The notes: a model not told the origin generated them from the letters alone. Positions 1 through 30,027 are shown, counted from the stretch's first letter. The stretch is DNA of 64,000 nt from Azolla caroliniana (GCA_043228905.1 JBHGNT010000010.1:13516001-13580000), one strand, 5' to 3'. A program made the numbers and translations.

Positions 1-2810
1 AAGAGGTAAACCTAGGCACCGCAGAAGACACAAGACCGGTTCACATCGCCAAAGAAATGACTCCAAAAAGGAAGACGACAATGATCACCTTATTAAAGGA
101 GTTCCGGGACGTGTTCACATGGTCTTACGAGGACATGCGGGGGCTAGATCCTCAGTTGTATCAACACCAGATACATCTGAGTAAGGATGCCAAGCCAGTG
201 GCGCAACGGCGCTACCGGATGAACCCTAACTATGCAACAAAAGTAAGGGATGTAATCGACAAATTGTTACGGGTAGGGTTCATCCGACCGGTCAAGAAGG
301 TGACATGGCTGAGTCCAATAGTCGTCGTACCGAAAAAGAATGGAAAAATTAGGGTATGTGTCGACTACCGGAAGTTGAATGCGGCAATAGTAACCGACGC
401 CTTCCCACTCCCTTTTACGGATGGAGTCCTGGATGCAGTAGTTGGTCACGAAGTTTATAGTTTCCTGGACAGGTTCAATGGCTACAATCAGATCCGGATG
501 CACCCTGATGACTAGGAGAAAACCGTTTTTGTTACCGAATGGGGAGTATTTGTCACCGTAGTCATGATGTTCGGACTTAAAACGGCGTCGGCAACCTTTT
601 AGCGGATAATCATGGAGATTTTGGGAGAATTTATTCCAGCATTCATGCAGGTGTTCCTAGATGATTTCGCCGTGTACAGTCGGGAAGGGGAACATCTCCA
701 ACACCTCCGACTATGTCTTGAGAAATGTAGGGTTTACCGGTTAAGCCTTAAACCAGCGAAATGCATGTTTGGAGTGTCAAGCGGTGCATTACTAGGCCAC
801 ATTGTTAGCAAGGACGGTATTGCAATAGAACCAGACAAGGTCAAAGCAGTTTTGGAGGCACCGGCACCCACCACGACGAAAGCATTGAGTCGGTTCCAAG
901 GACAAATCTGGTGGCATAGCCGGATGCTCCAGTATCTGGCAGACCTGGCCACACCATTGCATGTTGCTGTGCACCGGACACCGTTTAAATGGACGGACAC
1001 AGAAGAGAAGGCGTACCGGGCATTAAAAGTACTACTATCACAAGCACCGGTGGTGCAACCTCCTGATTGGTCTAAAGAATTCCACATATTCGTAGAGCGT
1101 CCGACATAGCAATGGGAGCGCATTAATGCAGCTTACCGAACCGAAGTGGTACTGGCCCGTGTATTATGCTAGCCGGAAGCTATCCCAAGCCGAACATAAT
1201 TACTCAATGACAGAAAGAGAAGCCTTGGGCATGATCTACAACATCACCAAGTTCCGACACTATCTATTGGGGAGGAAATTTTCCTTTCATGTAGACCATT
1301 CGGCGCTACTTTACTTGGTCTCAAAAGCATCACTCACGGGTAAGCTGGCCCGGTGGACGTTATTATTATAGGAATTTGAGTTCGAGATATTTCACCGGCT
1401 AGGCATACAACATGCGGTTGCGGATTATTTGAGCCAGTTAGATTCCGGTGAAACCGGTGACGGAGTCCGAGACGAGTTTCCGGATGCATAGTTGTTTAGG
1501 GTCACAACAGAAACGGCAACAAATGGTACGGTAGCTGAGGAGGACAAGTGGCTCATAAACATGCACCAATTTCTGAGCACCGGATTACCTCCAGAAAAGA
1601 GATTAAAAGAGACGAGCGGAAACGATTAGCAGTACAAAGCCAACACTTCTGCCTACTGTAGGACACATTGTACCATAAAGGCGCGGATGGCATATGGCGG
1701 CACGCGTTGCGCAAAGCACACTGCGGCGTTGCCGGAGGGCATTATGCTGGGGATCTCTACGGCAAGGAAAATATGGGAGAGTGGCCTATGGTGACCGACA
1801 ACATTAAAAGACGTCGTCCGGTATGCTAAGGAATGCGATTTATGTCAGCGGATGGGCCAACCAACAAAACAGGCAAGAATGCCTCACCAGCTGGTGCTGC
1901 TATTGGAACCATTTCAGAAATGGGGGCTGGACTTCGTCGGCCCATTTAAACCACCATCAATGAGAACCGGCAACCGATACGTGATTGTCGCTATGTGACA
2001 ACACCGTGACATCCATGGCAAAGTTTTTATATGAATATATCTGATGTCGGTATGGATGTTCGATCGAGCTAATTAGCGACCAAGGAGGGCATTTCCTAGG
2101 ACAAGTGGTAGAGAGCTTGACGACATTCTATGCGGTGGTGCACAAGCGAAGCACTCCATATTATCCGCAAGCGAACGGATTAGCCGAATCCACAAATAAG
2201 ACGCTACAAAACATACTGAGGAAATCGTCAATGAGAACCGGACGGATTGGGATACAAAGCTGCATAGTGTACTCTGGGACTACCGGACAACATATAAGAC
2301 AAGTATCCGGACAATGCCTTTCCGATTAGCATTCGGATTGGAAGCGGTAATGCCGATCGAATTCCAGGTTCCCAGTTTGTGGTTACAGGTTCGGAAACGC
2401 CTAAACGTGAAGGAGTCGGAAACAATCCGGCTTGCAGTACTATTCGAACTAGAGGAACGGAGAAGGAAAGCGTTCGTTGATCTACACTGGAAAGGTAACA
2501 AAAAAATGTTCGAGATTAGCAAGCCGGTACTTGTATTCCAGACCCGGATGGGTAAGATGTCGGGGAAGCTACGGTTCCTACCAGCTAGGGACACTCGCCG
2601 GAGAAGTTATGGGTAAATGGGTCAATGGGTTTCGACTCAAACCATACTATGGACCCATGCCAAGAAACCCGTTTGAGCAGACAAAGGCTGACACCGCACT
2701 AGACACCGGTAAGCACGACGAGACGATAGCCGGTCAAGCAAGCGGCAAGCACGGAACTGGTGAAAGGGACCAGAATCTGGAGAAGGGTCCGTTTGGGCCG
2801 GATACAGATT
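1..2810 (+). pseudogene. Gypsy A pol (RT-RNase H-integrase) with many stops and frameshifts
   Basis: ORF fragments 57-515, 612-1109, 1126-1371, 2105-2329, 2314-2616 and 2477-2812 are collinear with pol of element B (31710-34667). Confidence 0.92.
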
Positions 2811-3213
2811 AACAAGATCGAATTTATGAAAAAAAAAAGAAAAAGAAAGAAAAAGAAAATCAAATTAGATCCAATCAAACCCAAATCATGCGATGGCGAT
2901 GAGCGAACGGCCATATGCAATGAAAAGGGAGGAGTGAATGGGCACTTTGAAAAGCCTAGTAGTGGGCTATTTATAGCACATTAAAATGCCGCCACGTGGC
3001 ACTTCATTGCCATTATAGTACACGACGTGCACATGTGCAAGAATCGAGAAAGGCGCCAACATGCAGAAAGAAAACCTACACCGCATGGAGGCCTTCTCAT
3101 TTCGCGAACAGAGAATTGCAAACGCACACAGATGATTAAAGATAATCAGACGTGAGCAACTAGAGACCCCTAACGCACCTACCTCACCAACAACCACTGA
3201 CTCAAAAGGAGAA

Positions 3214-6099
3214 ATGGACTGCATGACGCTCTCTGAGGCAGCCAAGAAGTGGTTAAAGCAACACGGATTGGAAGGATTCTTGAGGATCATGGAGGGACCA
3301 CCACACAAAGAGGCGGAAAGGGTTATCAAGGACATCGACACAGAAGTAATCACAGAGGAGTCCATCCGTGCCCTGACGGGCCTACTCGAAGGCGGCATCT
3401 TCACCATCGACAACCCTACCCCGGAGCAGCTCACGAAATACTTCGGTGAGTACTCTTTGGCCAGCAAGGCATATTGCACACAGGGCGGTGAGGATGGCTT
3501 ATTCCAAGAGATTTCTCGTGTACTCCACGAGTTTGGCCATGTGTACCCTTGACCCCCGGCAATGCCTAGGAACAGAGCCAGTTTAATTATAGCGACATAT
3601 GAGGGTATACAGGTGGACTAGTTGGTGTTGATCGCTGACGGACTGCGCGCGGCCATACACTCGATAAGAGGGAAGGATGGCAGGAAAATATGGTCGGCGA
3701 TGGCGCAATGGCTCACGCTGTTAGCACCACCAGTGGAGCCCATCACGACGAAGAAGTGGGGAAGGTCAACCGAAGGAACCTCCAAAACGGCTTCAAAACG
3801 GCAACAATTATTGGCTGCTAAGGCAACCAAAGGGAAGGAGGCCGACACTGAAAAAACGGCAAAAGAGCGGCCTAACCAGGCGGAGACACAAGAGGCAACA
3901 CCAGCACGGCCAATAAAGATTACATTTCGCCGACTAGGTCAACAGGAGCCAGATCCCTTGGCAATAAAAATCAATCTTGGGACTTAGGAGGAGGAAACGG
4001 CGGAGGAGCCCAGCGAGCACCTCCAGTGGCACCAGAAGAAGAGCATTGCAGACCATGCCGGGAAGTAATTGGGTCTAGAAAAGGATAGGACGTCGGTACC
4101 CCGAACTGAGGGCCCAGAGCCAAGGGTGGAAGCGAAACTGGTTCAAATAGAACTGGTCACAGAAGTCCCTGCGCAGCAGGCTACACCGGCGGGTCAAAAA
4201 ATAACAAGACCCGTGATTCAGGAGCCAGTGATTCAATTGTCTACACCACCGGCACACCAGGACCAACCAGAGCCGAAACGGCCAACTGAGGCACAACCAG
4301 AGTCGGAACTGCCAAGTGGTAACCAACCGGAGCTAGAGTTGCCAACTAGACAAGATCAGCCACTGGCAAGCGCAGAAATCGGCCAACCCTCCGCGCTGAC
4401 ACAGCAACAAGGCACCGGTAGCCAATGGCTGCGGTGGATCGGTGAGCAAATAGCCGGAGTGGTCCATTATATATGGAGGCAGAGGAGAGAGCACAATTGG
4501 ACCGGTTGCTAGCCACAACCGGAGAACTAGAGAAGGCCCGGTCAAGGATCCAGAGCTTGGAACAAGAATTGGAAATAGCCAAGGAAGAATTGGCTAAGAT
4601 GGTCATAACAGCACCCCACGAGCAAGAACCGGTGGCTCCGGTACATGTACAAAATAATGAAACACCGACAACTATACATAATAATACGACCCTGATGACG
4701 GGAACAAATTTGGATATAATTACAGCACAAGCACAAGAGCTTGCCATTCTCAAAGAAGACTTGGCCACACAGTAAGATTTACGGGCCAAGGAAAGAAAAT
4801 TAAAAATGGCGGCAGAGGAGGAACAACGAAAGACTGACGACAACCTCTACCGAGCAGAAGAAAGTCTACGGAAGGGACACCAAGCCAATGACCGGCTTAA
4901 GGAAGAGAAAGAAAAAGTGTTGCAAGAGAAGGATAAACTCTGAAGGATGGCGGAAACAGAGATAGAGAGGCTCAAAGAAGAGCTTCGGCAGCAAAAGAAT
5001 AGGGAAGACCGAGCTCGCCGCCAAATCAATCAGAAGCTGAAGCAGAAAACAGAAGATTTTGATCGCTTGCAAACATGTCAAGACGGAATGCAAGAAGCTC
5101 ATCACCGACAGCGATCGGCAGAAGGAGAAGATGTTCGAGCTCCGGAACGAAGTGCAACGAGCGGAGTCGGCACTAGCGGAAGAATGCGCTGAGAAGGAAA
5201 CCATACGAGCTAAAGCGGCACAGGAACTCCTGGAACTCTAGATGCAACATCATGCGGAAACGGAATGCGCCAACATGGTCTTACAAAGAGTGCAGAAAAC
5301 CTATCAGGATCAACTGGTGCGCTACAAGGACTAGGTGATGGTAACTGCAAACCTGATCAAGCAGTTGAAAGATGAACGGTAGGCCGTAGAAGACAAATCA
5401 AAGATGGGGCTGGAGCGGATCCGGTGCATTGTACATGCATGGAAGAATCGAACGAAGCGCTTGATTGAAGACAACTCAGTATTATGGTGGTCAAAATGGG
5501 CGAAGCATGCTGCTGAGCAACAATTGCTGAGGGCGGACACAGAAAACCGGCAACGGGAAGGAGATGAGTTCTATAAGCTAGAAAAGGAAGACTTTGCTGC
5601 CGTGAAAGATGAATTGGCAGATGACTTTGTAGCGTTGGCTGATGAACCGCTAACAGTGGTCCAGCAACTAGTGGCACAACTCGACGATGATCGGTTGGAT
5701 AACCAAATCCGGTTTGAAAGTTACGAAAAGGAGAGGCTATGGCAAGAGGCGACGAAGAGCGCGGCAACAATCAATCTGAGTGATGAAGATCCATCATCGG
5801 AGCAAAGGACGGACAGAGGCTAGGTTGGGACAAGTGAACCGGATTTAACTCAGGAGGAGTAGCCAATGGAGGAATGTCCGCAACAACCGCCGGCACCAAG
5901 AGCCAGACAGCAACTATCGGAGGAGCAACGCCTAGAAGAGCCGGCGACCGCGCAGCAGCCGGAGCAACGGCCACAGCGAATGGAGTAGCAATAGGAGGAG
6001 CAGCAACAGCAGGGGCAGCAACAACAGTCCGATCAGCCTTCCGATGAACCCTTAGAACCCCTCGATCAGAGCATTCTGGACATTTTCAATGAGGATTGA
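3214..6099 (+). pseudogene. Extra 3' ORF of Gypsy A: globular N-terminal domain, Pro/Glu-rich linker, long predicted coiled coil; function unknown
   Basis: Fragments 3214-3552, 3622-3987, 4069-4512, 4473-4775 and 5404-5823 are homologous to 35082-38167 of element B; ends ...LDQSILDIFNED* at 6099. Confidence 0.8.
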
Positions 6100-6109
6100 A
6101 GGCCGGATA

Positions 6110-6150
6110 GTGGGATTCGACGTACAAGGTACTGTCCCACGGGCGTGCCA
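6110..6150 (+). other. tRNA-3'-half-like hairpin ending in CCA at the PPT position (inverted PBS)
   Basis: GTGGGA TTCGAC GTAC AAG GTAC TG TCCCAC GGGCGTG CCA directly abuts the LTR TG; no purine tract. Confidence 0.75.
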
Positions 6151-6826
6151 TGTCTTAGCCAGCCGGCAAGGAGTGGAGGACAGTTCAAAATGTGAAAGGG
6201 CAGGAATAATCGGAAGTTGTTGTTAGGATATTAAGTAATTAAGTAGATTTTGAGAAGTGAACGGACGGACCGGAATCGGTATGCCGATCCGGATCCGGGC
6301 CGGTTCATATTAGTGTGTCGGTTGGCACCGTTTTGTATGCAGAGCCGGTGATCTATAAAAAGGCCCGGTTACATTGTAAATGAGGACGGATAATTAATAA
6401 AGTCTATTGTCTTATCTCTGTGTATCGATTACCGTTCTGTGCTGATTACTTTCTATCTTACGCGTGTATTAGGATTCACGATATGTAGCTTAAGTAACCG
6501 ATAAAGGTCTGATTAATCGTTAGTCTAATGTCATGATATGGCAAGACTCAAACCCATGACCTTATGTTACATGGGTCAAGCTCTTACCATTAGACTATGA
6601 ATTGTAATACATAGGATATTATTTTCATTTATGCTTTATCATAGAAAATTGATGTATATTCCAGATCTCTCTGGAACATTCTAAAAGCTTCAGGATTATT
6701 CCTGAGAACACTATAAAAGAGGGCACTAGGCATTATGTTAAACCAAATTGGTTCAAACTGTCAGGAATAGTACTAAGCAGAGATGGACTTAGTACTAAAG
6801 AAGAGCAGTACTATTAGTACTAAGAG

Positions 6827-9800
6827 CATTTAATATAATTAGTAGTCCAGAGCATCCCATTGTCCTAGGATTACCTTGGTTTGAATTACATAATCCAGCC
6901 ATAGATTGGAGAACAAGAGAAGTCTGATATTGACCACCCCAAGAATCAACTCACCGAGTTTCGACCATTTCACTCCATCAACTACGCGAAGGACCCAAGG
7001 AGGCAATGTTCCTATTTGCCATATCAGTACATCCTTCCAACACTATTAAGAAGGACTCCTCAGTACAACTTTCGGCAAAATGTCATCCTTATGCCGATGT
7101 ATTTGACAAGGTAAAAGCCGGTACCCTTCCTCATCACCGTCTCTATGACTGTCCCATCGATTTACAACCAGGAACCGAGCCACCATGGGGACCAATTTAC
7201 AACTTGTCACCCACCGAGTTAGAAGTCCTTCGAGCCTATATAGAGGAGAACTTGGCAAGCGGGTTCATCCGTCATTCGAAATCTCCGGCCGGTGCACCCA
7301 TCTTCTTTGTCAAGAAGAAAGATGGCTCACTTCGTCTCGTCGTTGATTACCGCGGATTGAATAAAGTCACCATCCGGAATAGGTATGCACTTCCTCTTAT
7401 ATCAAATCTTTTAGAGCGAGTTAATGGTGCCAAGTTTTTTACTAAAATCGACCTACGAGGAGCGTATAACCTCGTGCGGATCCGACCGAGAGATGAATGG
7501 AAGACCGCCTTTCGCATGCGGTATGGGCATTTCGAGTATATTGTTATGTCGTTCGGCCTAACCAATGCACCCGCAGTCTTCCAACACATGGCAAATGATA
7601 TATTCAGAGACCTCTTGGATATTTGTTTGATCATCTATCTGGATAATCTATTGATTTATTCGAAGACCCAGGAAGAGCACGATTCTCATGTACTATTAGT
7701 ACTAAAGCGACTCCGCGCGAATGGTCTTTATGCCAAGCTAGAAAAATGTAGCTTTGACTACAAGCAAGTGGAATTTCTAGGCTACGTCATCTCCTCAAAA
7801 GGCATCGCCATGGATCTAGCTAAAATCCAAACTGTACTAGAGTGGCAAATTCCACGGTCGGTATGAGATGTACAATGTTTTCTATGTTTTGCTAACTTCT
7901 ACCGTAAGTTTATACAGGATTACTCGAAGATTATTTTACCTCTCACACAACTTACGAAGAAGGGCCAAGCATTTCTTTGGTCCATAGAAGCAGATATAGC
8001 TTTTCGGCATCTTAAGAAAGCCTTTACATCAGCACCGATTCTAGCTCATGTGGATACAAACAAACCATTCATCATCGAGATCGACGCATCAGATTTCGCC
8101 CTCGGTAGCATCCTTTCTCAACAAGGAGATAAAGAAGAGTTGCATCCGGTGGCTTTCCATTCGCGCAAATTTAATGTCGCAGAAATCAACTACGAAATAC
8201 ATGACAAAGAGTTATTAGCCATCGTGGATTCATTTGTGCAATGGCGGCATTTCTTAGAGGGCTCTCCACATCAGGTCATTGTCTTTAGCGATCATAAAAA
8301 TCTTGCTTATTTTCAGAATGCTCGCGTACTAAATCGACGGCAAGCTCGGTGGGCGCAATTCCTCACGTGTTTCGACTTCAAAATCACATATCGACCGGGG
8401 AAGCAGCAAGGAAAAGCAGATGCACTATCACGGCGGTCATATCTTGCACCTCGTCCTGGTGATGCAACATTTGATAATCAAAAGCAAGTAATCTTGGGAC
8501 CAACACGATTGCACACGACGCGGATTTTTCACACCCCGATGGATTCACGGATTACCGATGACATACGTGGAACCTTGAAGACGGATAGTTTTGCTCAAGA
8601 CATCCTGGAGCACATTGATACTTCTCGGGCATCCTGTTCTCAGTCTCAACAACCAGGTATTGACTACCGACAATTCGAATATCATGAGGGTTTGTTATTC
8701 TTTAAAAAGCGCGTATATGTCCCCGATTGCTCCTGTCGCCTTCAAATCGTCCAGCATTGTCACGACACCCATACGGCGGGACATTTCGGTAGTACTAAGA
8801 AGTTGGAGCTAGTGCAACGATCTTTTTGGTGGCCCCACATGCGCCGTTTTGTCGACGACTACGTTCGGACCTGTGATGCTTGTTGCCGAGCAAAGATGCC
8901 ACGACACCATCCATATGGCTTGTTGGAACCCTTACCGATTCCAAGTAAGCCATGGCAGTCTATTTGTCTTGATTTTATCACAGATTTGCCGGTCTCAAAG
9001 GGGTTCGATGCTATCCTAACCGTCGTCGATCGATATACGAAGATGGCACATTTTGTGCCGTGTACTAAAGCCATCACTAGCGAGGAAACCGCCGCCCTTG
9101 TTATGCGTGAGGTATTTCAGCATCATGGCCTCCCAGATAATATCATCAGTGACCGAGGACCGCAATTTGTCTCCAAATTTTGGCAGCATCTCATCAAGAT
9201 GCTCAAGGTCTCCTGCAACCTCTCCTCCGGCTACCATCCTCAGACCGACGGGCAGGCGGAACGAACAAACCAAACACTGGAGCAATATCTCTGGTGTTTC
9301 CTGAGTTATCAACAGGACGATTGGGCCGAGATTCTCCACTTTGCGGAGTTTGCGTATAATAATGCTATTCACTCCTCGACTCGGGTCTCCCCATTTTTCG
9401 CTTATACCGGTTCTCATCCTCGTTGGTCGGTGATCGACACCCCGGAGCTACCTACCAATCCTCGTGCCGGGGATCATTTGGAGAGACTACGCAAGATCCA
9501 GACAGATCTCTCGACTCATCTTCGTCATGCTCAACAAATGTAGAAGACTTACGCGGATCGTCATCGGCTTCCCTCTTTTGCCATCGGAGATCGAGTATGG
9601 CTCTTACGTCGTCACATCAAGACTACTCGACCGTGCGACAAGTTGGATTATCGACGACTCGGTCCTTTCCGTATTACGGGTAAGGTTAATGATGTCACAT
9701 TCCGCCTTGATCTCCCTCCGCAGCTTCAGATACATCCGGTTTTCCATTGTTCTCTTCTTGAACCTTATAAAGCAAACACCATTCCCGATCGTGTTACACC

Positions 9801-10047
9801 ACCGCCGCCCCCGTTGGAGTTGGACGCCGGCCCGGAGTATGAAGTTGCTGCCATCCTCAATTCCAAACTTGTTCGCAACAGACTTTATTATTTGGTCGAT
9901 TGGCTCAGTTATAGTCCAAGCGAACGTACTTGGGAACCCGTTGAACATGTTGCCAATGCTCAAGATCTTCTTGCTGATTTCCACCGAAAGTATCCAAACA
10001 AACCCGGTCCGCAATCAGCGCCGACTCGTTCCACTCGTCGTCTTTAA
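6827..10047 (+). pseudogene. Chromovirus 1 pol (partial protease, RT, RNase H, integrase, chromodomain) with in-frame stops
   Basis: ORFs 7006-7866 (SPAGAPIFFVKKKDGSLRLVVDYRGLN), 8050-9543 (DASDFALG, HPQTDGQAER), 9643-10047 (EYEVAAIL...YYLVDW...TWEP). Confidence 0.93.
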
Positions 10048-10058
10048 GGGGGAGATAG

Positions 10059-10513
10059 TGTCATGATATGGCAAGACTCGAACCCATGACCTTATGCTAC
10101 ATGGGTCGAGCTCTTACCATTAGACTATGAATTGTAATTTGTAGGATATTATTTTCATTTATGTGTTATCATAGAAAATTGATGTATATTCCAGATCTCT
10201 CTGGAACATTCTAGAAGCTTCAGGATTATTCCTAAGAACACTATAAAAGAGGGCACTAGGCATTATGTTGAACCAAATTGTTTCAACGCTAGTCTTAAGC
10301 CTTTTAGCCATTTTGTACTTATCCTTCACATAATATATTGGTTGTCATCATCATCTCTCTCTCTCTCTCTCATCCTTGCTATCTCTCCTTTCGCTTCTCT
10401 CTTTCTCTCTCTCTCTCTCTCTCGGGAGTCTTACGCAGTCTTGTCCTCTTAGTACTAATAGTACTGCTCTTCTTTAGTACTAATTCCATCTCTGCTTAGT
10501 ACTATTCCTGACA
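10059..10513 (+). repeat. 3' LTR of chromovirus 1
   Basis: U3 matches 6529-6757; similar to the LTRs at 16535-16949 and 21736-22158 in reverse. Confidence 0.93.
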
Positions 10514-16534: not shown

Positions 16535-16949
16535 TGTCAGGAAAAGTACTAAAGCAGAGATGGAATTAGTACTAAGAAGAGCAGTACTATTAGTACTAAG
16601 AGGATGGGACTGCGTAAGATTCCCAAGAGAGAGGAAGCGAGAAGAGGAGAGAGAGAGATAGGATGATGACAGCAGCTCTTATATTATATGAAAGATAAGT
16701 ACAAATCGGCTTAAGACTGGTGTTGAACCAATTTGGTTCAAAACAATGCCTTTGCCTCCTTTTATAGTGTTTTTAGGAATAATCCTGAAGCTTCTAGAAT
16801 GTTCCAGAGAGATCTGGAATATACATCAATTTTCTATGATAACACATAAATGAAAATAATATCCTACAAATTACAATTCATAGTCTAATGGTAAGAGCTC
16901 GACCCATGTAGCATAAGGTCATGGGTTCGAGTCTTGCCATATCATGACA
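16535..16949 (-). repeat. 3' LTR of chromovirus 2
   Basis: Near-identical to 21736-22158; TG...CA termini. Confidence 0.95.
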
Positions 16950-16960
16950 CTATCTCCTCC

Positions 16961-19900
16961 TTATAGACGACGAGTGGAACGAGTCGGCGCTAATTGCGGA
17001 CCGGGTTTGTCCGAATACTTTCGGTGGAAATCAGCAAGAAGATCCTGAGCATTGGCAACATGCTCGACGGGTTCCCAAGTACATTCGCTCGGACTATAAC
17101 TGAGCCAATCGACCAAGTAATAAATTTTGTTGCGAACAAGTTTGGAATCGAGGATGGCAGCAACTTCATACTCCGGGCCGGCGTCCAACTCCAGCGGGGG
17201 CGGCGGTGGTGTCACACGATCGGGAATGGTGTTTGCTTTATAAGATTCAAGAAGAGAACAATGGAAAACCGGATGTATCTGAAGCTGCGGAGGGAGATCA
17301 AGGCGGAAGGTGACATCATTAATCTTACCCGTAATACGGAAGAGACCGAGTCGTCGATAATCCAACTTGTCGCACGGTCGAGTAGTCTTGATGTGACGAC
17401 GTAAGAGCCATACTCGATCTCCGATGGCAAAAGAGCAGGGAATCCGATGACGATCCGCATAAGTCTTCTGTGTGTGTTGAGCATGACGAAGGTGAGTAGA
17501 GAGATCCATCTGGATCTTGCGTAGCCTCTCCAAATGATCCTCGGCACAAGGGTTGGTAGGTAGCTCCGGAGTATCGATCACCGACCAACGAGGATAGAAA
17601 CCGATATAAGCGAAAAATGGGGAGACCCGAGTCGAGGAGTGAATAGCATTATTATACGCAAACTCCGCAAAGTGGAGAATCTTGGCCCAATCGTCCTGTT
17701 GATAACTCAGGAAACACCAGAGATATTGCTCCAGCGTTTGGTTTGTTCGTTCCGCCTGCCCGTCGGTCTGAGGATGGTAGCCGGAGGAGAGGTTGCAGGA
17801 GACCTTGAGCATCATGAAGAGATGTTGCCAAAATTCGGAGACAAATTGCGGGCCTCGGTCACTGATAATACTGTCTGGGAGGCCATGATGCTGAAATACC
17901 TCACGCATAACAAGAGCGGCGGTTTCCTCGCTAGTGATGGCTTTAGTACACGGCACAAAATGTGCCATCTTCGTGTATCGATCGACGACGGTTAGGATAG
18001 CATCGAACCCCTTCGAGACCGGCAAATCTGTGATAAAATTAAGACAAATAGACTGCCACGGCTTACTTGGAATCGGTAAGGGTTCCAACAAGCCATATGG
18101 ATGGTGTCGTGGCATCTTTGCTCGGCAGCAAGCATCACAGGTTCGAACGTAGTCGTCGACAAAACGGCGCAAGTGGGGCCACCAAAAAGATCGCTGCACT
18201 AGCTCCAACGTCTTAGTACTATCGAAATGTCCCACCGTATGGGTGTCGTGACAATGGTGGACGATTTGAAGGCGACAGGAGCAATCGGGGACATATACGC
18301 GCTTTTTAAAGAATAACAAACCATCATGATATTCGAATTATCGGTAGTCAATACCTGGTTGTTGAGACTGAGAACATGATGCCTGAGAAGTATCGATGTG
18401 CGCCAGGATGTCTTGAGCAAAACTATCCGTCTTCAAGGTTGCACGTATGTCATCAGTAATGCGTGAATCCATCGGGGTGTGAAAAATCCGCGTCGTGTGC
18501 AATCGTGTTGGTCCCAAGATTACTTGCTTTTGATTATCAAATGTTGCTTCACCAGGACGAGGTGCAAGATATGAATGCCGTGATAGTGCATCTGCTTTTC
18601 CTTGCTGCTTCCCCAGTCGATATGTGATTTTGAAGTCGAAACGCGTGAGGAATTGCCCCCACCGAGCTTGTCGTCGATTTAGTACGCGAGCGTTCTTAAA
18701 ATAAGCAAGATTTTTATGATCGCTAAAGACAATGACCTGATGTGGAGAGACCTCTAAGAAATGCCGCCAGAGTACAAATGAATCCACGATGGCTAATAAC
18801 TCCTTGTCATGTATTTCGTAGTTGATTTCTGCGACATCGAATTTGCGCGAATGGAAAGCCACCGGATGCAACTCTTCTTTATCGCCTTGTTGAGAAAGGA
18901 TGCTACCGAGGGCGAAATCTGATGCGTCGGCCTCCATGATGAATGGTTTGCTTGTATCCACATGAGCTAGAATCGGTGCTGATGTAAAGGCTTTCTTAAG
19001 ATGTCGAAAAGCCATATCTGCTTCTATGGACCAAAGAAATGCTTGGCCCCTCTTCGTAAGTTGTGTGAGAGGTAAAATAATCTTCGAGTAATCCTATATA
19101 AACTTACGGTAGAAGTTAGCAAAACCTAGAAAACATTGTACATCTCGTACCGACCGTGGAATTTGCCACTCTAGTACAGTTTGGATTTTAGCTGGATCCA
19201 TGGCGATGCCCTTTGAGGAGATGACGTAGCCTAGAAATTCCACTTGCTTGCAGTCAAAGCTACATTTTTCTAGCTTGGCATAAAGACCATTCTCGCGGAG
19301 TCGCTTTAGTACTAATAGTACATGAGAATCGTGCTCTTCCTGGGTCTTCGAATAAATGAATAGATCATCCAGATAAATGATCAAACAGATATCCAAGAGA
19401 TCTCTGAATATATCATTTGCCATGTGTTGGAAGACTGCGGGTGCATTGGTTAGGCCAAACGGCATAACAGTATACTCGAAATGCCCATACCGCGTGCGAA
19501 AGGCGGTCTTCCACTCATCTCCCGGTCGGATGCGCACGAGGTTATACGTTCCTCGTAGGTCGATTTTAGTAAAAAACTTGGCACCATTAACTCGCTCTAA
19601 AAGACTTGATATAAGAGGAAGTGCATACCTATTCCGGATGGTGACTTTATTCAATCCGCGGTAATCAACGACAAGACGAAGTGAGCCATCTTTCTTCTTG
19701 ACAAAGAAGATGGGTGCACCGGCCGGAGATTTCGAATGGCGGATGAACCCGCTTGCCAAGTTCTCCTCTATGTAGGCTCGAAGGACTTCTAACTCGGTGG
19801 GTGACAAGTTGTAAATTGGTCCCCATGGTGGCTCGGTTCCTGGTTGTAAATCGATGGGACAGTCATAGGGACGGTGATGAGGAAGGGTACCGGCTTTTAC

Positions 19901-20443
19901 CTTGTCAAATACATCGGCATAAGGATGATATTTTTTTGGAAGTTGTACTGAGGAGTCCTTCTTAATAGTGCTGGAAGGATGTACTGATATTGCAAATAGG
20001 AACATTGCCTCCTTGGGTCCTTCTTCGCGTAGTTGATGGAGTGAAATGGTTGAAACTTGGTGAGTTGATTCTTGGGGTGGTCGATACCGGACTTCTCTTG
20101 TTCTCCAATCTATGGCTGGATTATGTAATTCAAACCAAGGTAATCCTAGGACAATGGGATGCTCTGGACTACTAATTATATTAAATGATATTACACACAC
20201 AAAACTACCTAGGACAACTTGAATGGGTTCTGATTCTTCTACAATATTCCCGGAAGCAATGGGACGACCATCAATGACTACTACAGATGCGGGACAAGGA
20301 AGTTTTCTTAAGGATATCTGAGAAGCTTGGGCAAAATTTCGATCCATGAAACAGGAATTAGCTCCGGAATCTAAAAGTGCTAGGACGGGTACTGGGGGAG
20401 TACTTTTAGTACTAACAATGACTTGGGCTAGGAATGGAACCAC
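16961..20443 (-). pseudogene. Chromovirus 2 pol (protease LLDSGA, RT YLDD, RNase H, integrase, chromodomain) with two in-frame stops
   Basis: ORFs 19094-20443, 18338-19015 and 16961-18319 share one frame. Confidence 0.95.
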
Positions 20444-20503
20444 TAATGGGCTGTACAGATCTAGGGTTGCTGTCCAACCAAACGGCTCCTATTTTGGTTG
20501 GAC

Positions 20504-21661
20504 TCAATCGTTTAACTCTTCATCTAATTGACTAAGGATTTCAAATTTATTTGAGATACTTGGGCTATTAGTACTATGAATACTATCAAACACTCTATTA
20601 GTACTATTAATAATATCAGACACTCCTAAGGGAAGAATTGACTCGGGTTTAGTACAGGCTACAATTTGATTTACTTGTCTTCTTGGCCTATGGGGACAAT
20701 TGATTGCGATATGCCCTGGTCTACCGCAATAAAGACATAATCGATTTGCACGTCGGCGTTGCTTTTCTTCTTCCGATAACGGGCCGCGTCGATGCATGGT
20801 ATCGATCTCCATCGGTGTCGAAGTATTTGCTTGAGGTATGTCTCGTGCAAACGGTCTAGCCGCGACTGCGGCGTAAGTGGGCTCCGGCCTAGCGCGTGGT
20901 ATCTGTAATTGACGTTCCGAACGCCGTTCGAAAAGGCGGTTGTCACATCGGACCGCTCGACTGATTGCCTCCGTAAGAGACTTTGGTTCTTCGGGGAAGG
21001 TTAGAAGTAGATCTTTGACATCATTTCGCAGGCCAGAGCGAAACTGCTCCATTAGTGCTTGATCATCCCAGGGTATGTCGGAAGCGAGTAGGCGAAAATC
21101 CGCAGCGTAGGCAGAGGCTGGACGATCGCCTTGACGCAATCGCCAGATCTTGTTGATTGCCGTCCTGATGCTATCGGTGTCTCTAAAGCAGGCTTTGAAC
21201 TCACTAATAAAATCTTCAAAGTTATTAAGCAAGGACGATTGTTTTTCTAGAAGCGGAGCGAACCATGCTAAGGTTGAGCCGCTAAGCAACGTGCATATTA
21301 AGCCGACTCGGGATGCATCAGTGGGGTATCGGGAAGGATGCATTTGGAGGACTAATCGTACCTGATTAAGGAATCCCCTGAATTGCGATCGTGTTCCATC
21401 AAATTTCACAGGAAGTCCAATCTTCGGCTCTTTATGAAATCCTTGGGGACTTGATCCTTGTTGTTGCAATGCCGCTTCGAGTTGTTGCACCCGTAACGCT
21501 AACTCCCCATGTTGTTGCTGCGTTTGTTGCTTTTCTAGAGCTATTTGTTGCAGATCCCCTATCAGCTGTTGGTTTTCTTGTTCCAGGGCAACAAACTTTT
21601 CTTTTAGGCACTGTAACTCGGAGAAAACGGATTGATATTCTTGGGCGCTAACAGTAGCCAT
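20504..21661 (-). CDS. Chromovirus 2 Gag (coiled coil, retrotransposon gag domain, CCHC knuckle)
   Basis: ATG at 21661 (MATVSAQ...); FDGTRSQFRGFL...LRQG..ASAYAADF; CLYCGRPGHIAINCP. Confidence 0.9.
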   Translation of the reverse strand: MATVSAQEYQSVFSELQCLKEKFVALEQENQQLIGDLQQIALEKQQTQQQHGELALRVQQLEAALQQQGSSPQGFHKEPKIGLPVKFDGTRSQFRGFLNQVRLVLQMHPSRYPTDASRVGLICTLLSGSTLAWFAPLLEKQSSLLNNFEDFISEFKACFRDTDSIRTAINKIWRLRQGDRPASAYAADFRLLASDIPWDDQALMEQFRSGLRNDVKDLLLTFPEEPKSLTEAISRAVRCDNRLFERRSERQLQIPRARPEPTYAAVAARPFARDIPQANTSTPMEIDTMHRRGPLSEEEKQRRRANRLCLYCGRPGHIAINCPHRPRRQVNQIVACTKPESILPLGVSDIINSTNRVFDSIHSTNSPSISNKFEILSQLDEELND

Positions 21662-21721
21662 AGTAGAGGGAAAAGGGTAGGAGGATGAGGGAGAACGACA
21701 AGTAGGCTGGAGGAAAGAGGA

Positions 21722-21735
21722 AAATTGGTTCAAAC
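21722..21735 (-). other. Self-priming PBS of chromovirus 2 (not tRNA-complementary)
   Basis: GTTTGAACCAATTT follows the 5' LTR and is 12/12 complementary to AAATTGGTTCAA (21943-21932), 32 nt downstream of the TATAAAA box (21975-21969). Confidence 0.85.
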
Positions 21736-22158
21736 TGTCAGGAATAGTACTAAAGCAGAGATGGAATTAGTACTAAGAAGAGCAGTACTATTAGTACTAA
21801 GAGGACGGGACTGCGTAAGATTCCCGAGAGAGAGGAAGTGAGAAGAGGAGAGAGAGAGATAGGATGATGACAACAACTCTTATATTATATGAAAGATAAG
21901 TACAAATCGGCTAAGAGGCTTAAGACTGGTGTTGAACCAATTTGGTTCAAAACAATGCCTTTGCCTCCTTTTATAGTGTTTTTAGGAATAATCTTGAAGC
22001 TTCTAGAATGTTCCAGAGAGATATGGAATATACATCAATTTTCTATGATAAAGCATAAATGAAAATAATATCCTACAAATTACAATTCATAGTCTAATGG
22101 TAAGAGCTCGACCCATGTAGCATAAGGTCATGGGTTCGAGTCTTGCCATATCATGACA
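21736..22158 (-). repeat. 5' LTR of chromovirus 2
   Basis: Matches 16535-16949. Confidence 0.95.
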
Positions 22159-23145
22159 ACTAGGAGTCATGGCGACAGAAGACCGAGTAGCTGGATGTAA
22201 AGACGACATTCCTACACAGAGATCTAGAAGAAGACATCTACATGTCTCAACCGGTAGGCTTCACGGCGACGAGGGAGGAAAGTCACCTCGTATGTCAACT
22301 GAAGAACAGTCTCTATGGCGTGAAATAAGCGCCGAGGATGTGGTACCAGAAGTTCGACTCCTACATCAGGCAGCTTGGATATCGCCGATCCGACTCTGAC
22401 ACCAGCACCGCTTAGAACGCCGATCTGACTATCGGACAAAGACTCTCCTTCAACGGACAAGGAGAGAGAGCTTAATGGAAAGATGCCCTATGCATCGGCC
22501 GTAGGAGGTATCATGTACGCAATGGTGGCGACCCGACCCGACCCGACCTAGCCTATGTCGTACGAGTGGTCAACCAGTACATGTCAAACCCAGGACGAAA
22601 GAATTGGGAGGCCGTCAAACACATCTTCAGGTACCTAAGAGGGACTGAAGATACACAGCTGACTTTTGGACTGACAACCTCAGCCAAAGTCGAAGGCTAC
22701 ATCGATTCCGACTATGCCGGGAACACAGACAATCGGAAACCGACATCAGATTACATCTTCACCTATTATGGCGGTTCAATATCATGGAGGTCCAAACTTC
22801 AAGAGTGCACGGCTCTATCGACCACAAAAGCCGAGTACATAGCAACATCGGAGGCAGCAAAGGAAGCGATCGGGTTACATCGACGGTCTACCACCTTCTC
22901 ATCTACAAGCCGAATCGACTAACCAACGCCGACCATCTATTGCGACTCGCAAAGCGCAATTCACCTCATTAACAATCCCGTCTATCATGCAAAGATGAAG
23001 CACATTGAGGTACGGTATCATCACATCCGGGAGCTTATAACTGAGAAGAGGCTCGAAGTCCGGAAGATCGACACCGAGGTGAACATCGCGAATTGCCTGA
23101 CAAAGCCACTCCCAAATCAACATTTCAGAGCACTAAGGACAAAGA

Positions 23146-23523
23146 TGTGTTGGCCGGTCAAGGGCCGAAGGACAAGTGGGAAAGCCGAACCGGATATATG
23201 TATATATAGTATAATTATTATTAGAATTATTATTCGGAGGGACGGATCCGGTACAGTTGTGCCGATCCGGATCCGGACCGATTCGGAGCCGGTTGCCTAA
23301 AGGGCACCATTTTGTAATATTGTCGGATGCCTATAAAAGGATCCGGAAGTAATACGAATTATACTGGAGCACTTATTCTGTATCTTTGCATCTATATTGT
23401 CTTACCGTCTGTGCTTATAATCCTTATCTTACGCGTGTGGTCTAACATCCTAACCTTACCACCCCTTTGGAGAAGTGTTCGGAAGGACACCTGTGTTGTG
23501 GCTAGTCCGACCAGAAGGCAACA
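23146..23523 (+). repeat. 5' LTR of Gypsy B
   Basis: Direct repeat of 38216-38613 with an ~20-bp indel after the TATA box. Confidence 0.93.
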
Positions 23524-23529: not shown

Positions 23530-23539
23530 TGGCGACCAC
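23530..23539 (+). other. Primer-binding site, probably tRNA-Arg
   Basis: TGGCGACCAC, 6 nt after the LTR; matches plant tRNA-Arg(UCG)-type 3' ends as recalled, not searched. Confidence 0.6.
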
Positions 23540-25288
23540 GATTCCTGCAGAGTGCAGAGAACACCGAGGGATGGATGTCTAGACCGAACAGCGACCACAT
23601 TACTGAATGAGGGAGATGGTTCGCCAAACGACAACAACGACGGGAAGCCTTGCAGCAAGCGGCCGAGGAGATCCAGCAGGATCGGTCCTTTTCCAGAACG
23701 CTTCGGAGAGTCGCAGAAGAAGCATTGCAGTTCCGGAATCAACAATTCTCCGACGAAGGCAATAGCCTGACTATTCTGCAGGAAGCAAAATCAATACTAC
23801 AAGCGCTTGCCGGTGGCGACGGAGACGCAGGAGCATTCGCAAACCTAGAGTCGGATCCAGACAGCGAAGAGAGCGTTGCGTCACGGTATAAAAGCAGTCA
23901 CGACACCCCGAACGATCCGGAGGAAGACGGGTCGGACAACTCATTGACGCCGGAACCAACGGAAGAAATAACCTTGGAGTTCGGGGACCGGCAATCGCCG
24001 AGAGAGACTAATCGTATACCGACACCAGCTGCGGAGGAAGCGAAGGATCGTATACCGACACCACCCGCGGAGGAAGCAAGGAATCACACACCACCGAAAG
24101 AGCGGAGAGAGAGGGATACCCAGTCGAAACAACCAGATGACACCATGCCGTATCCTTACCCAAAATACCGGGATGATCCCGACGCGGAGGCTCATGTGTA
24201 CGCATTTCTCCAGACATGAGAAGCCAACCATGTCTCTTAGAGATTGATGGAGCCCGAGGCCAAGCGGTCCAAAGTCGCCGAATTCGGCATGACGCTGGAA
24301 GGACTGGCCGCTCGTTGGCATGCAAAACATTTACCCAGCAGCTTTGCCACATTCGAGGCCTTGAAGGCAAAATTCCTTCGGTTGTTCCATAGACAAGTAG
24401 AATAGAGGGAACTAGTCGGGCAATTCTATACCACACGACATGAAGAGCAGGAAACAATACCACAATTTATCATCCGGTTCCAGACCTTGCACAACCAGTT
24501 GACAAGAGCACCTCCCGAAGACGAAGCGAAAGCAGTATTTTTGGCTACATTAAGGGAACCACTTAGAACAATGTGCGGAGTTGTCGATTTCCGTACCAGC
24601 ACGGTGGACCAGGTCATTGACCGAGTACTAGAGATGGACAAAAACAGTTCATTCATGTCACTAGGAATGCTACACCAGGCTCTCCCGAAGGAAGAAGATT
24701 TGAGGTTCCGGCAAGCCCTGCAGTGCACAACGTGTCTCAATTCGGGCCACTCAACGGTCGACTGCACTATGCGCACACAGTGCATGATATGCCACTCTCG
24801 GGCACATACGATGGACCGATGCGAGTACAACTTGCTCAATCGGCAGGCGGCACCGGTCCGACACATAGAACCACGGAACAATCAGGACCCGGAAGAAGAC
24901 AAATTCGAGAGAGACGATCGCGACCAACGCGAGCGCGGCGACAGATACACTGATCGGCGACGTGAGGACTATGATCGCAACGAGAAACGCAGGGACGGCT
25001 ATCGCAGGGACCGGTATGAACGAGACGACTCCCTGGAATATGACCGACGTAGAGACGATAGACGTCAAGGGAACCGAAATTTCCGGCGAAATCAGAAGCG
25101 AGGGTTTTTTCACAGAGAGGAGTGCCAGGAGGCGGCGAGAGGCGGCGAGAGATAACAACCCAGTATCGGCACCAGAGAACCAGAAAACAGAAGACAACCG
25201 CCGGGTAATCTCCACCGGAAGCAAAGGAGAATCAAGTAACAACCACAAAGTATATTGTTACTACTGCCGAAAGGAAGGGCATTACAGT

Positions 25289-25914
25289 TGTTGGGATTTC
25301 GGTCCCTTTCGGATGGGATGGTCGGATATCGGAGATGAATGCCGACAAGCCCGGTTTCGGTTTCGGTTTCGGATCCGGATGACGAAGACCCCGGCTTCGG
25401 TGCCGGATGACGAATGTACCCGGAGAGCGATCCGGATGCAGGGACATATCCGTGAATATGTTCGCTACGAGCCCCCTGAGGCTATAGTTGTAAATAGCCC
25501 AAAGTCATATAAGTATAAATATGACTTAGGGCAAACAGTTTTTCTGTTGCTTCTCATTTTTCTGTTTTTCCACTTTAGAGGAGTGAAGAGAGAGCAGCCG
25601 TGAGAGAGAGAAAGAGAGAGAGCGCGAGAGAGAAAGAGGTAGACGCCTCTGTGTATTTCCGCCGCCTGTGGCGAGGACAGCGAGCTCAAGGTCGTCGCCT
25701 TGGAGCTCGTCATTGTATACTTCTCTGTATAGTGTTGTTTGGAGTCTTGTACTCCCGTGGTTTTTCCCCGTTTAGGGTTTTCCACGTTAATCCTTGTGTA
25801 CTCGCGTTTCTTCGTTTTGTTTCTACGTGTGTTTCCTATTTTCTGCTCCATTGATCCGCGATTAATCGGTTGTGGCCGAGATAAGAAGGTGGATAGAAGG
25901 GCCTATTCCTTACA
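25289..25914 (+). repeat. 5' LTR of Copia G
   Basis: TG...CA; appears identical to the 3' LTR apart from repeat copy number. Confidence 0.97.
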
Positions 25915-25943
25915 AACTGGTATCAGAGCGACTGTTGCAGAAA

Positions 25944-28900
25944 ATGGAAGGCGGCGGCAGCGGGCAGCCGATGATGATGGTGCTGAATGCACAGAATTAC
26001 GCCGACTGGAAGATCAAGATGGAGGATCTTCTGATTGTTCGGGACCTGTACGAACCGATTGACAGGTCGGAAATACCGAAGGGGGTACTTGAGTCGGAGT
26101 GGAAGCTCCTGAACCGGAAAGCCGTAGCGACGATCCGACAATATGTCGACGTAAGCGTCCTGCAACATGTGGCGAACGACACCAACGCATACGAGATGTG
26201 GAAGAAGCTGTCTGGCCTCTATGAGAGGAAGAATGCGTTGAACCGGACCTCCCTGATGAGGAAGATTGTGAATCTCAAGTATCGGGACGGCGAGAGTATG
26301 GTGGAACACGTAAGCACGTTCATGGGATTCGTGAACCAGCTTGCGGCGATCAAGTTCCCGTTGGAGGATGCAATGCAAGCCATCATCCTGATGTGTACAT
26401 TGCCGGAAAGCTGGGAGAACTTGGTGGTGACTCTCAGCACCTCGTGCACCGAAGATAACTTGTCCTTACAAACTGTAAAGACAAGTATTCTGAATGAAGA
26501 AGCGCGTCGGAGAGATAAGGAACCGGCCTCCGACCCGAAGATGCTGTTTACCGAATCGGATCGGGGAAGACAATGGAACCGGAGTCCGCAAAGACGGGAG
26601 AAGTCGGGGACCCGGTCGCAGTCAAGAGGAAGGCCCACATGCTTCCACTGTGGGAAGCCGGGGCACTTCCGAAAGAATTGTCGGCATTACCGAAAAGACA
26701 ACGGAGCCGACGACACCGACTCGAAGAAGTCACCGGAGAGAAACGGTGCATACCGGGGAGCCACGGACCGGAGAGGTTCGGATCGGCGAGGGCAAGACCG
26801 GAAAGGAACAACGGCACTCGCGGCAAGTGAGGAAGAAATCATGCTCATCACCGAAGAAGGTGAGCTAAACGTTGCCGGCGATGAGACGACCTGGGTGGTC
26901 GATTCCGGAGCATCGTTCCACCTGACCCCGGAGAGAAGATACTTCTCATCCTACACAGCCGGCGAGCATGGCTGTGTTCGGATGGGAAATGAAGGTACGT
27001 GCCGGATTGCCGGCATAGGAGACGTGTGGTTGACAACCCCGACCGGATGCAAAATGCTGCTGAAAGATGTCCGACACGTTCCGGAGGTCCGATTGAACCT
27101 GATTTCGGCCGGGAGGCTAGATGATGAAGGCTACACGGGTAGCATCCGGAACGGTGTCATGAAGTTCAGCAAGGGGAGCTTGATAGTGGTTCGGGCCCGG
27201 AAGGTCAACACACTGTACCTGATGAATGCCCGGTTATGTCCGGAAGAGCTGAATGTGGCAGCCGACACTGCCGGTGAGCTGTGGCACAAAAGACTGTGCC
27301 ACATGAGTGAGAAGGGGATGAAGAGGCTTGCAGAAGACAACCTCATCCCAGTGAAGCACGTGCACCTGGAGAAGTGCACCGATTGCCTGGCCGGTAAGCA
27401 GAACCGAACCTCCTTCCACTCAAGGCCACCGACGAGACGTAGCGCACCATTGGAGTTGGTGCACACTGATGTGTGTCAGGTAGAAACGAAGTCACATGGC
27501 GGAGCCCAGTACCTCGTGACATTCATTGATGATCACAGCCGGAAGCTGTGGACGGCACCGTTGAAGACAAAGGACCAAGTGTTGTCCGTCTTCAAAGAAC
27601 TCCACGCGAGAGTGGAAAGGGAATCCGGCAAGAAGCTGAAAGCGATACGAGCGGATAACGGAGGGGAATACCGGGGGCAGTTCCAGGAGTACTGTCGCTC
27701 GAAGGGAATCCGACTCGAGTTTACTGTGCCGAAGACGCCGGAACTGAATGGGCTGGCCGAGAGGATGAACCGGACCATAATGGAGCGGGTCCGGAGTATG
27801 CTGGCGCATGCGAAATTACCCAAGGGGTTTTGGGCTGAGGCAATGTCGACGGCGACATACGTGATAAACAGATCACCCTCAGTACCTTTGGACGGAGACA
27901 CGCCGCAGAGAGTGTGGACCGGTAAGGAAGTGTCCTACCGGCATCTGAAGGTGTTCGGGTGTCTCGCATACGTGCATGTGGCAAAGGACCGGAGAGGAAA
28001 GCTAGATCCGAAGACCCGGCCATGCATATTCCTCGGTTACGGCGACGACGAGTTCGGCTACCGAGTATGGGACCCGGTCGACAAGAAGATATTCCGGAGT
28101 CGTGATATCATCTTCATGGAGAACAAGACGCTCGCCGACTGGGAGTCGGAGAAGAAGATGAAGAGCTCCAAGTCGACCGGTGAGGATCAACTCTACAAGG
28201 AGCAGTCCCGACCGGCAAGGGACCGGTTAGCACTCGAGGATCCGGCCGAAGACAGTGAAGACACAGAACCGGCCGAAGAAGATGAAAATGATACCGGAAC
28301 CGGCCCCGATCCCGAAATGGTCTCGGATGAAGAAGAATCGGAAGAACCGGTTACCGAAGCTCCGGAACGGAGATATCCTCTAAGAGAGAGAAGGGCCCCC
28401 CGGAGATTTCCGGAACCAGAGCACGTGCTGCTAACCGACGAGGGGGAGCCGGAGAGCTTTGAAGAAGCGAAGCATGACACCCAGAGCCGCAGGTGGTTGA
28501 GTGCCATGCAGGACGAGATGGATTCCCTGCATGAGAACCACACATATGAACTTGTGGAGTTGCCGAAGGGAAAGCGGGCACTTCGAAACAAGTGGGTGTT
28601 CAAGCTGAAACCGGGAGATGCCGGAAACCCCCCGAGATACAAAGCCAGGATCGTGGTGAAGGGGTTTCAGCAAAAGAAGGGCGTCGACTTCGACGAGATA
28701 TTTGCCCCGGTAGTGAAGATGACCTCCATCCGGACGGTGCTGAGCATAGCGGCAAGCATGGACCTCGAGGTAGAACAGATGGACGTGAAGACAGCATTCC
28801 TTCACGGTGACCTCGAAGAAGAAATCTACATGCAGCAACCGGAAGGATTCGAGAAGAAAGGGAAGGAGCACCTGGTATGCCGGTTGAAGAAGAGCCTTTA

Positions 28901-30017: not shown

Positions 30018-30027
30018 AGGGGGAGTT

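Follow-up and report, generated by a model that had tools for sequence, protein, structure and literature searches.

The question raised by this locus is what a short hairpin ending in CCA is doing immediately upstream of the 3' LTR of a retrotransposon, at the place where a polypurine tract (PPT) would be expected. According to reviews and surveys, plus-strand synthesis in all retroviruses and LTR retrotransposons is primed by the PPT (PMC5371799; PMC6317226). The window examined, by which we mean the whole stretch of DNA that was analysed, comprises 64,000 nt of Azolla caroliniana (GCA_043228905.1 JBHGNT010000010.1:13516001-13580000, one strand), and a first-pass annotation had pointed out the hairpin in two Gypsy elements within it, referred to here as elements A and B. 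The parts listed for element A (the outer stem GTGGG/CCCAC, the TTCGA motif, the AAG loop, the GTAC/GTAC stem, the tail and the CCA) were all found to be present as described. The feature had been given as running from 6110 to 6151; the start was correct, and the end has to be moved back by one base, as the CCA ends at 6150. Hairpin and tail together are termed the module below, and the coordinates of its parts and of the surrounding features are collected in Table 1.

Table 1. Features of elements A and B at and around the module, in positions of the window
Feature	Position	Strand	Remarks
Element A, decayed internal region	1-6109	+	remains of RT, RNase H, integrase and extra ORF
Element A, T-arm-like hairpin	6110-6140	+	covariance model, covariation, T-arm match
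Element A, outer stem	6110-6114 with 6136-6140	+	GTGGG with CCCAC
Element A, extra base after outer stem	6115	+	A
Element A, T-loop-like motif	6116-6120	+	TTCGA
Element A, extra inner pairs	6120 with 6135; 6121 with 6134	+	A6120-T6135, C6121-G6134
Element A, inserted mini-hairpin	6121-6133	+	stem GTAC 6122-6125/GTAC 6129-6132, loop AAG 6126-6128, bulged T6133
Element A, single-stranded 10-nt tail	6141-6150	+	GGGCGTG 6141-6147, CCA 6148-6150
Element A, 2-nt spacer	6151-6152	+	TG, attachment-site dinucleotide between CCA and LTR
Element A, 3' LTR	6153-6525	+	first dinucleotide TG>TC
Element B, 5' LTR	23148-23523	+	TSD AGATG 23143-23147 upstream; without module upstream
Element B, 5' PBS	23530-23541	+	TGGCGACCACGA; 6 nt past LTR end, then small hairpin
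Element B, module	38176-38215	+	inner stem GTGC/GCAC; tail GAGCGTG + CCA
Element B, spacer	38216-38217	+	TG
Element B, 3' LTR	38218-38613	+	TGTTGG...CAACA; then TSD AGATG 38614-38618

Both elements encode RT, RNase H and integrase in this order on the plus strand, as identified by Pfam matches, and it is on this gene order, together with TG...CA LTRs and a 5-bp TSD (the LTR pair and the TSD having been seen in element B), that they were assigned to Ty3/Gypsy. The description of the two as clearly diverged was borne out, with identities of 71-78% in pol and LTRs that are barely alignable. Element B is complete, its two LTRs being 92% identical, and it has a Copia element nested within it at 25288-30676. 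A tandem duplication of 280 bp (37230-37769, 99% identical) was also observed in the 3' non-coding or extra-ORF region of this element. The internal region of element A continues past the left end of the window and its 5' end lies outside it; its plus-strand remains of RT, RNase H and integrase place the module at the 3' end of this internal region, just ahead of the 3' LTR. The TC with which the LTR of element A begins is taken to be a private mutation of TG, as G accounts for 99.8% of the depth of related contigs at 6154 (four runs, four organism labels).

At ~6525 the 3' LTR of element A is cut or abutted by the LTR of another element, and a chromovirus-like element directly adjoins its end at this point. 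Chromovirus-like elements were found at 6526-10286 and 16535-22158 with common LTRs (TGTCATGATATG...), and Pol III-like boxes and an inversion had already been flagged in this region by the first-pass annotation.

An intact relative of family A (L088) has a 1036-aa gag-pol, an 887-aa pol fragment and an extra ORF of 978 aa that ends 85 nt upstream of the module. This extra ORF, situated between integrase and module, is intact at L088:3394-6330 and decayed at ~3214-6099 and ~35000-38100 in the window. The L088 product has no Pfam match, and for its residues ~50-230 an Atlas model, of low confidence, resembles proteins of the plant-mobile-domain/Transposase_32 type (TM 0.61-0.66 by hit).

To see what the module may do, its distance to the LTR has to be fixed. 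The LTR had previously been taken to begin at the TG directly after the CCA, and this proved incorrect: the TSD AGATG of element B sets the LTR start at TGTT, 2 nt further on. The same start, 2 nt past the CCA, was found in relatives with LTR pairs, namely L001 (TSD TGTAG) and two loci of the fern Adiantum nelumboides (GCA_022343405.2), L003 and L006 (TSD CCAAG). All 85 pattern matches, as well as the extra matches of the covariance model, read module-CCA-NN followed by the TG(TT) of an LTR, and among 57 distinct contexts the NN is TG in 42, GG in 12 and CG, AG or TA in one each. Conversely, 69 of the 74 LTR starts found by similarity have a module upstream, and one more (L020) has the same arrangement with a shifted start call. 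The remaining four (23148 in the window, L003:7052, L006:7019 and L083:1353) are all 5' or solo LTRs, in which the similarity begins exactly at TGTT. The matches are thus tied to 3' LTR boundaries, one of the points on which the original proposal depended.

Two other readings of the junction were considered and rejected. A hairpin situated within U3, behind an upstream purine-rich PPT, disagrees with the 5' and solo LTRs, which start at TGTT without the module, and with families in which the upstream sequence is T-rich. A minus-strand element with an ordinary 5' LTR-PBS arrangement disagrees with the plus-strand RT, RNase H and integrase of elements A and B and with the LTRs of element B, which are direct repeats with a TSD.

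The module is placed as a PPT would be, directly 5' of U3, with its 3' end setting the left LTR boundary across a short spacer. Primer and LTR TG are normally separated by two or three nucleotides at the attachment site (PMC2829016), and given this usual gap, the primer that defines the LTR should end at the A of the CCA. Viewed from the minus strand, on which the element A module reads TGGCACGCCCGTGGGA, the complement of the 10-nt tail has the PBS-like form TGGCACGCCC, and the junction becomes CA-NN-TGGCACGCCC, with TGG within 0-5 nt of CA, as in an inverted PBS.

No PPT was found in any of the 85 module instances. Purines make up 44% of the 16 nt before the spacer, in which there is no purine run of the PPT kind (about 8-15 nt, ending 0-3 nt before the LTR), and the 15 nt upstream of the hairpin are T-rich in some families, with purine content down to 20%. 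The chromovirus and the Copia element in the window have AAGGGGGAGA and GAAGGGGGAG 2-3 nt before the LTR, and an intact Gypsy relative at 51% RT identity (L004) has the PPT GAGAAAGGGG. The nearest relative seen without the module is the element of L004/L005. Its 21.9-kb contig (ENA ctg129904) is marked circular and holds an intact Gypsy element, assembled in tandem or as a circle, with a gag of 451-531 aa, an RT-RH of 843 aa, an integrase of 514 aa, a normal PPT and the PBS TGGCGCCGCTGCC.

The hairpin itself was then assessed for covariation. The inner stem had been reported to covary on the basis of GTAC/GTAC in element A and GTGC/GCAC in element B, and this was confirmed for four of six inner pairs, which show changes on both sides (CG/AU/UA, GC/AU, UA/GC and GC/AU). 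The length given for the helix was not upheld, as it is two pairs longer, with T6133 bulged, and one of the two added pairs also covaries. Among 30 distinct sequences, 95% of the cells of the six inner pairs are paired compared with 81.6% in shuffles, although most copies come from one host genus and are related, so that these are counts of cells and not of events. The covariation score was 0.412 against 0.176 for shuffled alignments; none of 500 shuffles reached it, and sliding the register gave far lower scores. The covariation therefore persists in a larger alignment, and a model-fitted alignment of 94 matches (39 distinct) gave the same picture. In the latter the outer stem is invariant, which is partly ascertainment since the search pattern prescribed both outer stem and tail. 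Plus-strand G-U pairs (5) outnumber A-C pairs (2), a difference that is not significant, and with so few pairs RNA and minus-strand ssDNA are not told apart as the folding form.

Further support for the structure was obtained from contig coverage, which stands in for copy number here. The helix is found in three compensatory versions, which reach 80.6x, 39.6x and 21.4x, whereas broken helices do not exceed 7.2x. The canonical tail was found in 70 instances, at up to 80.6x, and variant tails in 11, all at or below 6.2x (Mann-Whitney p 0.0003). As helix variation is compensated in the high-copy families and tail variants occur on low-coverage contigs only, the helix is kept as a structure and the tail as a sequence.

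RNAfold adds a closing stem to the modules of elements A and B (6100-6152, 38166-38217), in which an upstream GGCCG pairs with CGUGCC of the tail; this would leave the final A alone unpaired, in the manner of a discriminator. The upstream GGC is present in most families and absent in the TGTTGTCC families, and this acceptor-like closing stem was rejected, as it is not kept across all families.

To what extent the module is confined to these two elements was addressed by several searches. The first-pass pattern, with 3 mismatches allowed, matched only elements A and B in the window and gave 0 matches in 100 shuffles. A 44-nt covariance model (R1), built from other copies with element A left out, also matched only element A (58.4 bits, E 2e-12) and element B (72.3 bits, E 7e-16) in the window, these E-values being rough. 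Metagenome contigs were scanned with a pattern that prescribed outer stem, TTYG and tail and allowed any 5-22 inner bases, and the 81 contigs recovered all belong to one series of plant-associated assemblies. Window, Adiantum and metagenome together provided 85 instances with 31 distinct cores and 77 distinct contexts. The viral contigs scanned for the module gave 0 matches, and L002, L007 (Riccia) and L090-L093 had no LTR pair and no model match. By their LTR starts the instances represent at least six families (TGTTGGCC, TGTTAGCC, TGTTGACC, TGTTACCC, TGTTGTCC and TGTTACGG), the flanks of which are not alignable between families. The 16 inner nucleotides left free by the pattern are 81% identical in pairwise comparison, against 34% upstream and 46% in the LTR.

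In the Logan contigs of four runs (four organism labels) aligned with 5950-6350, summed depth was 61,000-335,000 over 6104-6159, compared with ~5,000 upstream and 3,000-10,000 downstream, which indicates that the module is common to far more repeat copies than its surroundings are. With the covariation holding in the larger alignment and with the tie to the LTR boundary, the view that this is a selected RNA or ssDNA structure, rather than a chance tRNA or PBS fragment, is well supported.

A second island of conservation was observed ~110 nt into the LTR, at 6258-6299 (38320-38345 in element B), around the near-palindrome GCCGATCCGGATCCGG, where the summed contig depth in the four runs (150,000-276,000) is as high as that of the module. 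Repeats resembling CCGGATCCGG also fill the LTR of L004.

With regard to its origin, the hairpin of the module is, judged by its sequence, a T-arm of the tRNA-Arg(UCU) type with a mini-hairpin inserted in the T-loop; this assignment, like that to tRNA-Arg(UCG) below, is made on animal sequences printed in papers. Once the 13-nt insert is removed, the commonest version reads GTGGG TTCGAGT CCCAC, which is the T-arm (5-bp stem, 7-nt loop) of human tRNA-Arg-TCT-3-1; the human tRNA-Arg-TCT T-arm sequence is printed in PMC9126842 and PMC13267816. Relative to this T-arm, element A adds one A after the stem and element B has TT for GT. The insert is placed after T-loop position 58 (58/59), and the T-loop fold tolerates extra bases after this position. 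Adiantum copies have no insert and have 8 nt from stem to CCA, which is the spacing of a tRNA, compared with 7 nt in the window type. The tails read GGGCGTG in the window type, C(G/A)TG(C/T)GTG in Adiantum and CAGGTGTG in L001.

The likeness does not extend to a whole tRNA. ARAGORN found 0 tRNA genes in the window and 86 loci, and in Rfam, including the tRNA model RF00005, there was no tRNA match to the module, either at gathering score or with E raised to 10, truncated mode included, only noise. As no full cloverleaf with an anticodon arm was found by either program, the module was rejected as a tRNA or tRNA gene. Membership of a known RNA family was also rejected, as no Rfam model reached its gathering score and the matches gained by raising E to 10 were noise.

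The sites at which minus-strand synthesis would start are a useful comparison for the module tail. In families A and B the 5' PBS is TGGCGACCACGA, situated 4-6 nt past the CA of the LTR, with a small hairpin next downstream. tRNAs of the tRNA-Arg(UCG) type have a 3' end complementary to this site, and a 3' tRF-Arg(TCG) printed in PMC4688932 is complementary to 12 nt of it. The hairpin is conserved, has the form CTGCA-loop-TGCAG and directly follows the 12-nt PBS in both families (23542-23565; L016:3873-3895 and others). Generally, the 5' sites consist of the LTR CA, 0-6 nt and TGG, with a complementarity of 10-12 nt only. The PBS with its CTGCA hairpin and the module tail with its own hairpin suggest that both primer sites are built as a short PBS with an adjacent template-strand hairpin.

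One group of elements, the TGTTACCC family, carries the tail complement at its 5' end. These are small non-coding LTR elements (L083:1353-4280, L060, L031, L019 and L021; ~12 loci) with an LTR of ~380 nt, a strong G6/C6 hairpin at the LTR end and an internal region of ~2.3 kb that has no long ORFs and contains a long purine-rich stretch of low complexity. Their 5' PBS is TGGCACGCCC, directly after the terminal CA of the LTR (~12 loci), and is the exact complement of their own 10-nt module tail, stopping where the hairpin stem would begin. The use of this sequence as a 5' PBS suggests that an RNA ending GGGCGUGCCA-3' serves as a primer in this genome, with ~10 paired bases. In families A and B the tail and the PBS are not complementary, as in element B with the tail GAGCGTGCCA and the PBS TGGCGACCACGA, so that an RNA segment complementary to the element's own PBS, as required for a self-primer of the Tf1 type, is found in the TGTTACCC family only. 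No sense copy of the 5' primer of families A and B was detected in any locus, and self-priming accordingly does not explain these families.

On the sequence comparisons above, the module is probably the plus-strand priming site of a fern Ty3/Gypsy lineage, used in place of a PPT. What was observed directly is where the module lies and how it is spaced, that no PPT is present, that the inner helix covaries, that the tail does not vary in high-copy families and that the 10-mer is used again as a 5' PBS; that priming occurs at the module, and by which RNA, we infer from these. Taken together, the place of the module, its distance to the LTR, its conservation and the loss of the PPT make a plus-strand start right after the CCA likely.

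The mechanism that we favour, if tentatively, is that the plus strand would be primed in trans by a CCA-ended host tRNA on the minus-strand DNA. Once the minus strand had been made and the template RNA removed, TGGCACGCCC would be exposed beside the hairpin as a second, inverted PBS. A host tRNA with the 3' end ...GGGCGUGCCA would anneal there by its acceptor 3' strand, tRNA-Arg(UCU) or its 3' fragment being the most likely candidate, and its natural CCA-OH would prime the plus strand through U3-R-U5. Plus-strand DNA would then start right after the A of the CCA, the next 2 nt would be the dinucleotide trimmed by integrase and the integrated LTR would begin TGTT, with the T-arm-like hairpin as an accessory that limits or positions the short duplex. 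Priming by a tRNA in trans is preferred because the site mirrors a PBS, because the same 10-mer is a true PBS elsewhere, because the tail is fixed in sequence as PBSs are and because a natural tRNA end explains the CCA without special cleavage. However, priming in trans has no need of the T-arm 5' half, of the TTCGA loop or of the covarying mini-hairpin, and these are conserved nonetheless, which would fit an RNA structure acting in cis. The 7 nt from stem to CCA in the window type, against 8 in a tRNA, also count against it, as does the failure of the Rfam tRNA model to score the module even when truncated. In addition, the 5' PBS of families A and B matches a different tRNA-Arg, and two tRNA species would need to be packaged.

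A fuller version of trans priming, plausible but again tentative, is that both strands are primed by host tRNAs, with tRNA-Arg at the PBS on the RNA and tRNA-Arg(UCU) at the inverted PBS on the minus strand, the PPT having been lost. Under this version the T-arm copy and mini-hairpin would form the docking structure of the second initiation complex.

The conservation of the entire hairpin is better accounted for by the main rival, a primer supplied in cis, although on balance we regard such a primer as somewhat unlikely. It would be the element's own hairpin-plus-tail RNA, cut right after the CCA and either left by RNase H or provided by the second packaged genome. Such an RNA would mimic a tRNA bound to the PBS by its acceptor strand, and RT would start on it as on a tRNA primer. 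It would give a reason for keeping the whole T-arm, including the 5' half and TTCGA, and for the covariation of the insert; the related contigs cover the two halves of the module, 5' and 3', to the same depth, and the small, non-significant surplus of G-U over A-C pairs leans the same way. The geometry and the lack of a PPT fit this primer and a trans tRNA equally. Against it, RNase H would have to cut precisely after the CCA in a sequence that is not purine-rich, and we know of no cut of this kind. It also gives no reason for the fixed sequence of the tail or for its CCA end, and the tail is not matched to the tRNA of the family's own 5' PBS (TGGCGACCACGA in families A and B). For the TGTTACCC family 5' PBS, a cleavage on RNA:RNA as in Tf1 would be needed before any DNA was made.

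Less probable still is that the module has another role in cis, such as packaging or dimerisation, recruitment of a tRNA-binding host factor, cyclisation of the RNA through its two ends (5'-3') or, as with the 3' half of the Ty3 site, help in starting the minus strand, with the plus strand primed otherwise. Part of the Ty3 initiation complex is indeed situated near the genome 3' end (PMC5371799), and in the TGTTACCC family the tail can pair with the element's own 5' PBS, which would cyclise the RNA. The tail of families A and B is not complementary to their 5' PBS, however, nor do these elements hold a sense copy of their 5' primer, and the module is in the tRNA sense, unlike the Ty3 3' PBS, which is a complement. 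The RNAfold stem between GGCCG and the tail could be read in favour of such a role, but the upstream GGC on which it depends is missing in the TGTTGTCC families. The invariant 2-nt distance to the LTR and the missing PPT would also be left unexplained, as something must still prime there.

It is very improbable that the module is a relic without function, inherited from an ancestor in which part of a primer tRNA had been copied by read-through or template switching. Against this stand the 81% identity of the free inner segment compared with 34-46% in the flanks, the compensatory changes, the occurrence of the module in intact families and in those of high copy number, as well as in Adiantum and four related organisms, and the restriction of broken helices and variant tails to low-coverage contigs.

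If plus-strand priming at the module is correct, a large and still intact lineage without a PPT would represent a second solution to plus-strand initiation, and the CCA-ended module may be a living example of tRNA-like ends that tag genomes for replication. The 44-nt model marks the 3' LTR junctions of the lineage exactly, and LTRdigest and LTR_FINDER look for a PPT. It would also be predicted that 3' tRNA fragments could act on elements with the module at two sites. The known variations in priming, namely the bipartite PBS of Ty3, the self-priming of Tf1 and half-tRNA primers, concern the minus strand. A full-text literature search returned no description of a CCA-ended tRNA module at the PPT position, although absence from that search is not proof of novelty.

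When compared to known systems, the module shares with the PPT its place 5' of U3, the 2 nt to the TG of the LTR and its conservation while the flanks diverge. It differs from a PPT in being 44% purine, structured, tRNA-derived and CCA-ended, and to our knowledge no RNase H-resistant hybrid of this kind exists. In Sireviruses a conserved stem-loop is likewise found exactly at the 3' LTR junction, where it is thought to guide primer formation (PMC2829016), although there a canonical PPT (AGGGGGAG) is kept in the loop, whereas the module has none. Helenus elements have a tRNA-like part in the LTR and, unlike the elements described here, keep a PPT. The tRNA-like structures found at the 3' end in plant RNA viruses and in the Mauriceville retroplasmid resemble the module in that a CCA-ended tRNA mimic is the start signal for a polymerase or RT. 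Those structures mimic whole tRNAs at the RNA 3' terminus, whereas the module is internal, upstream of U3-R with a whole LTR downstream in every copy, and mimics only the T-arm and the acceptor 3' strand.

Self-priming in Tf1 and Sushi also draws its primer from the RNA of the element, over a duplex of 10-11 nt, and the complementarity of tail and PBS in the TGTTACCC family is of that length. Tf1 differs in using the 5' end of the transcript and in priming the minus strand, and elements A and B lack any complementarity between tail and PBS. The bipartite PBS of Ty3 (Gabus et al. 1998; PMC5371799) is similar in having tRNA-related sequence near the 3' LTR of a Ty3/Gypsy element together with a short 5' PBS complementarity. 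Its 3' part, however, lies in U3 and is the complement of the T or D arm of the primer tRNA, whereas the module is outside U3, in the tRNA sense and related to a different tRNA from that of the 5' PBS in elements A and B. The remaining comparison is with the minus-strand PBS. That site is found at the opposite end of the element, and on the opposite strand, from the module site, which would act on a DNA template to start the plus strand and is embedded in a T-arm copy. The minus strand of the module nevertheless has the form of such a site, CA-NN-TGG followed by 7 nt, its tail is kept as a sequence rather than as a structure, and the identical 10-mer is the 5' PBS of the TGTTACCC family.
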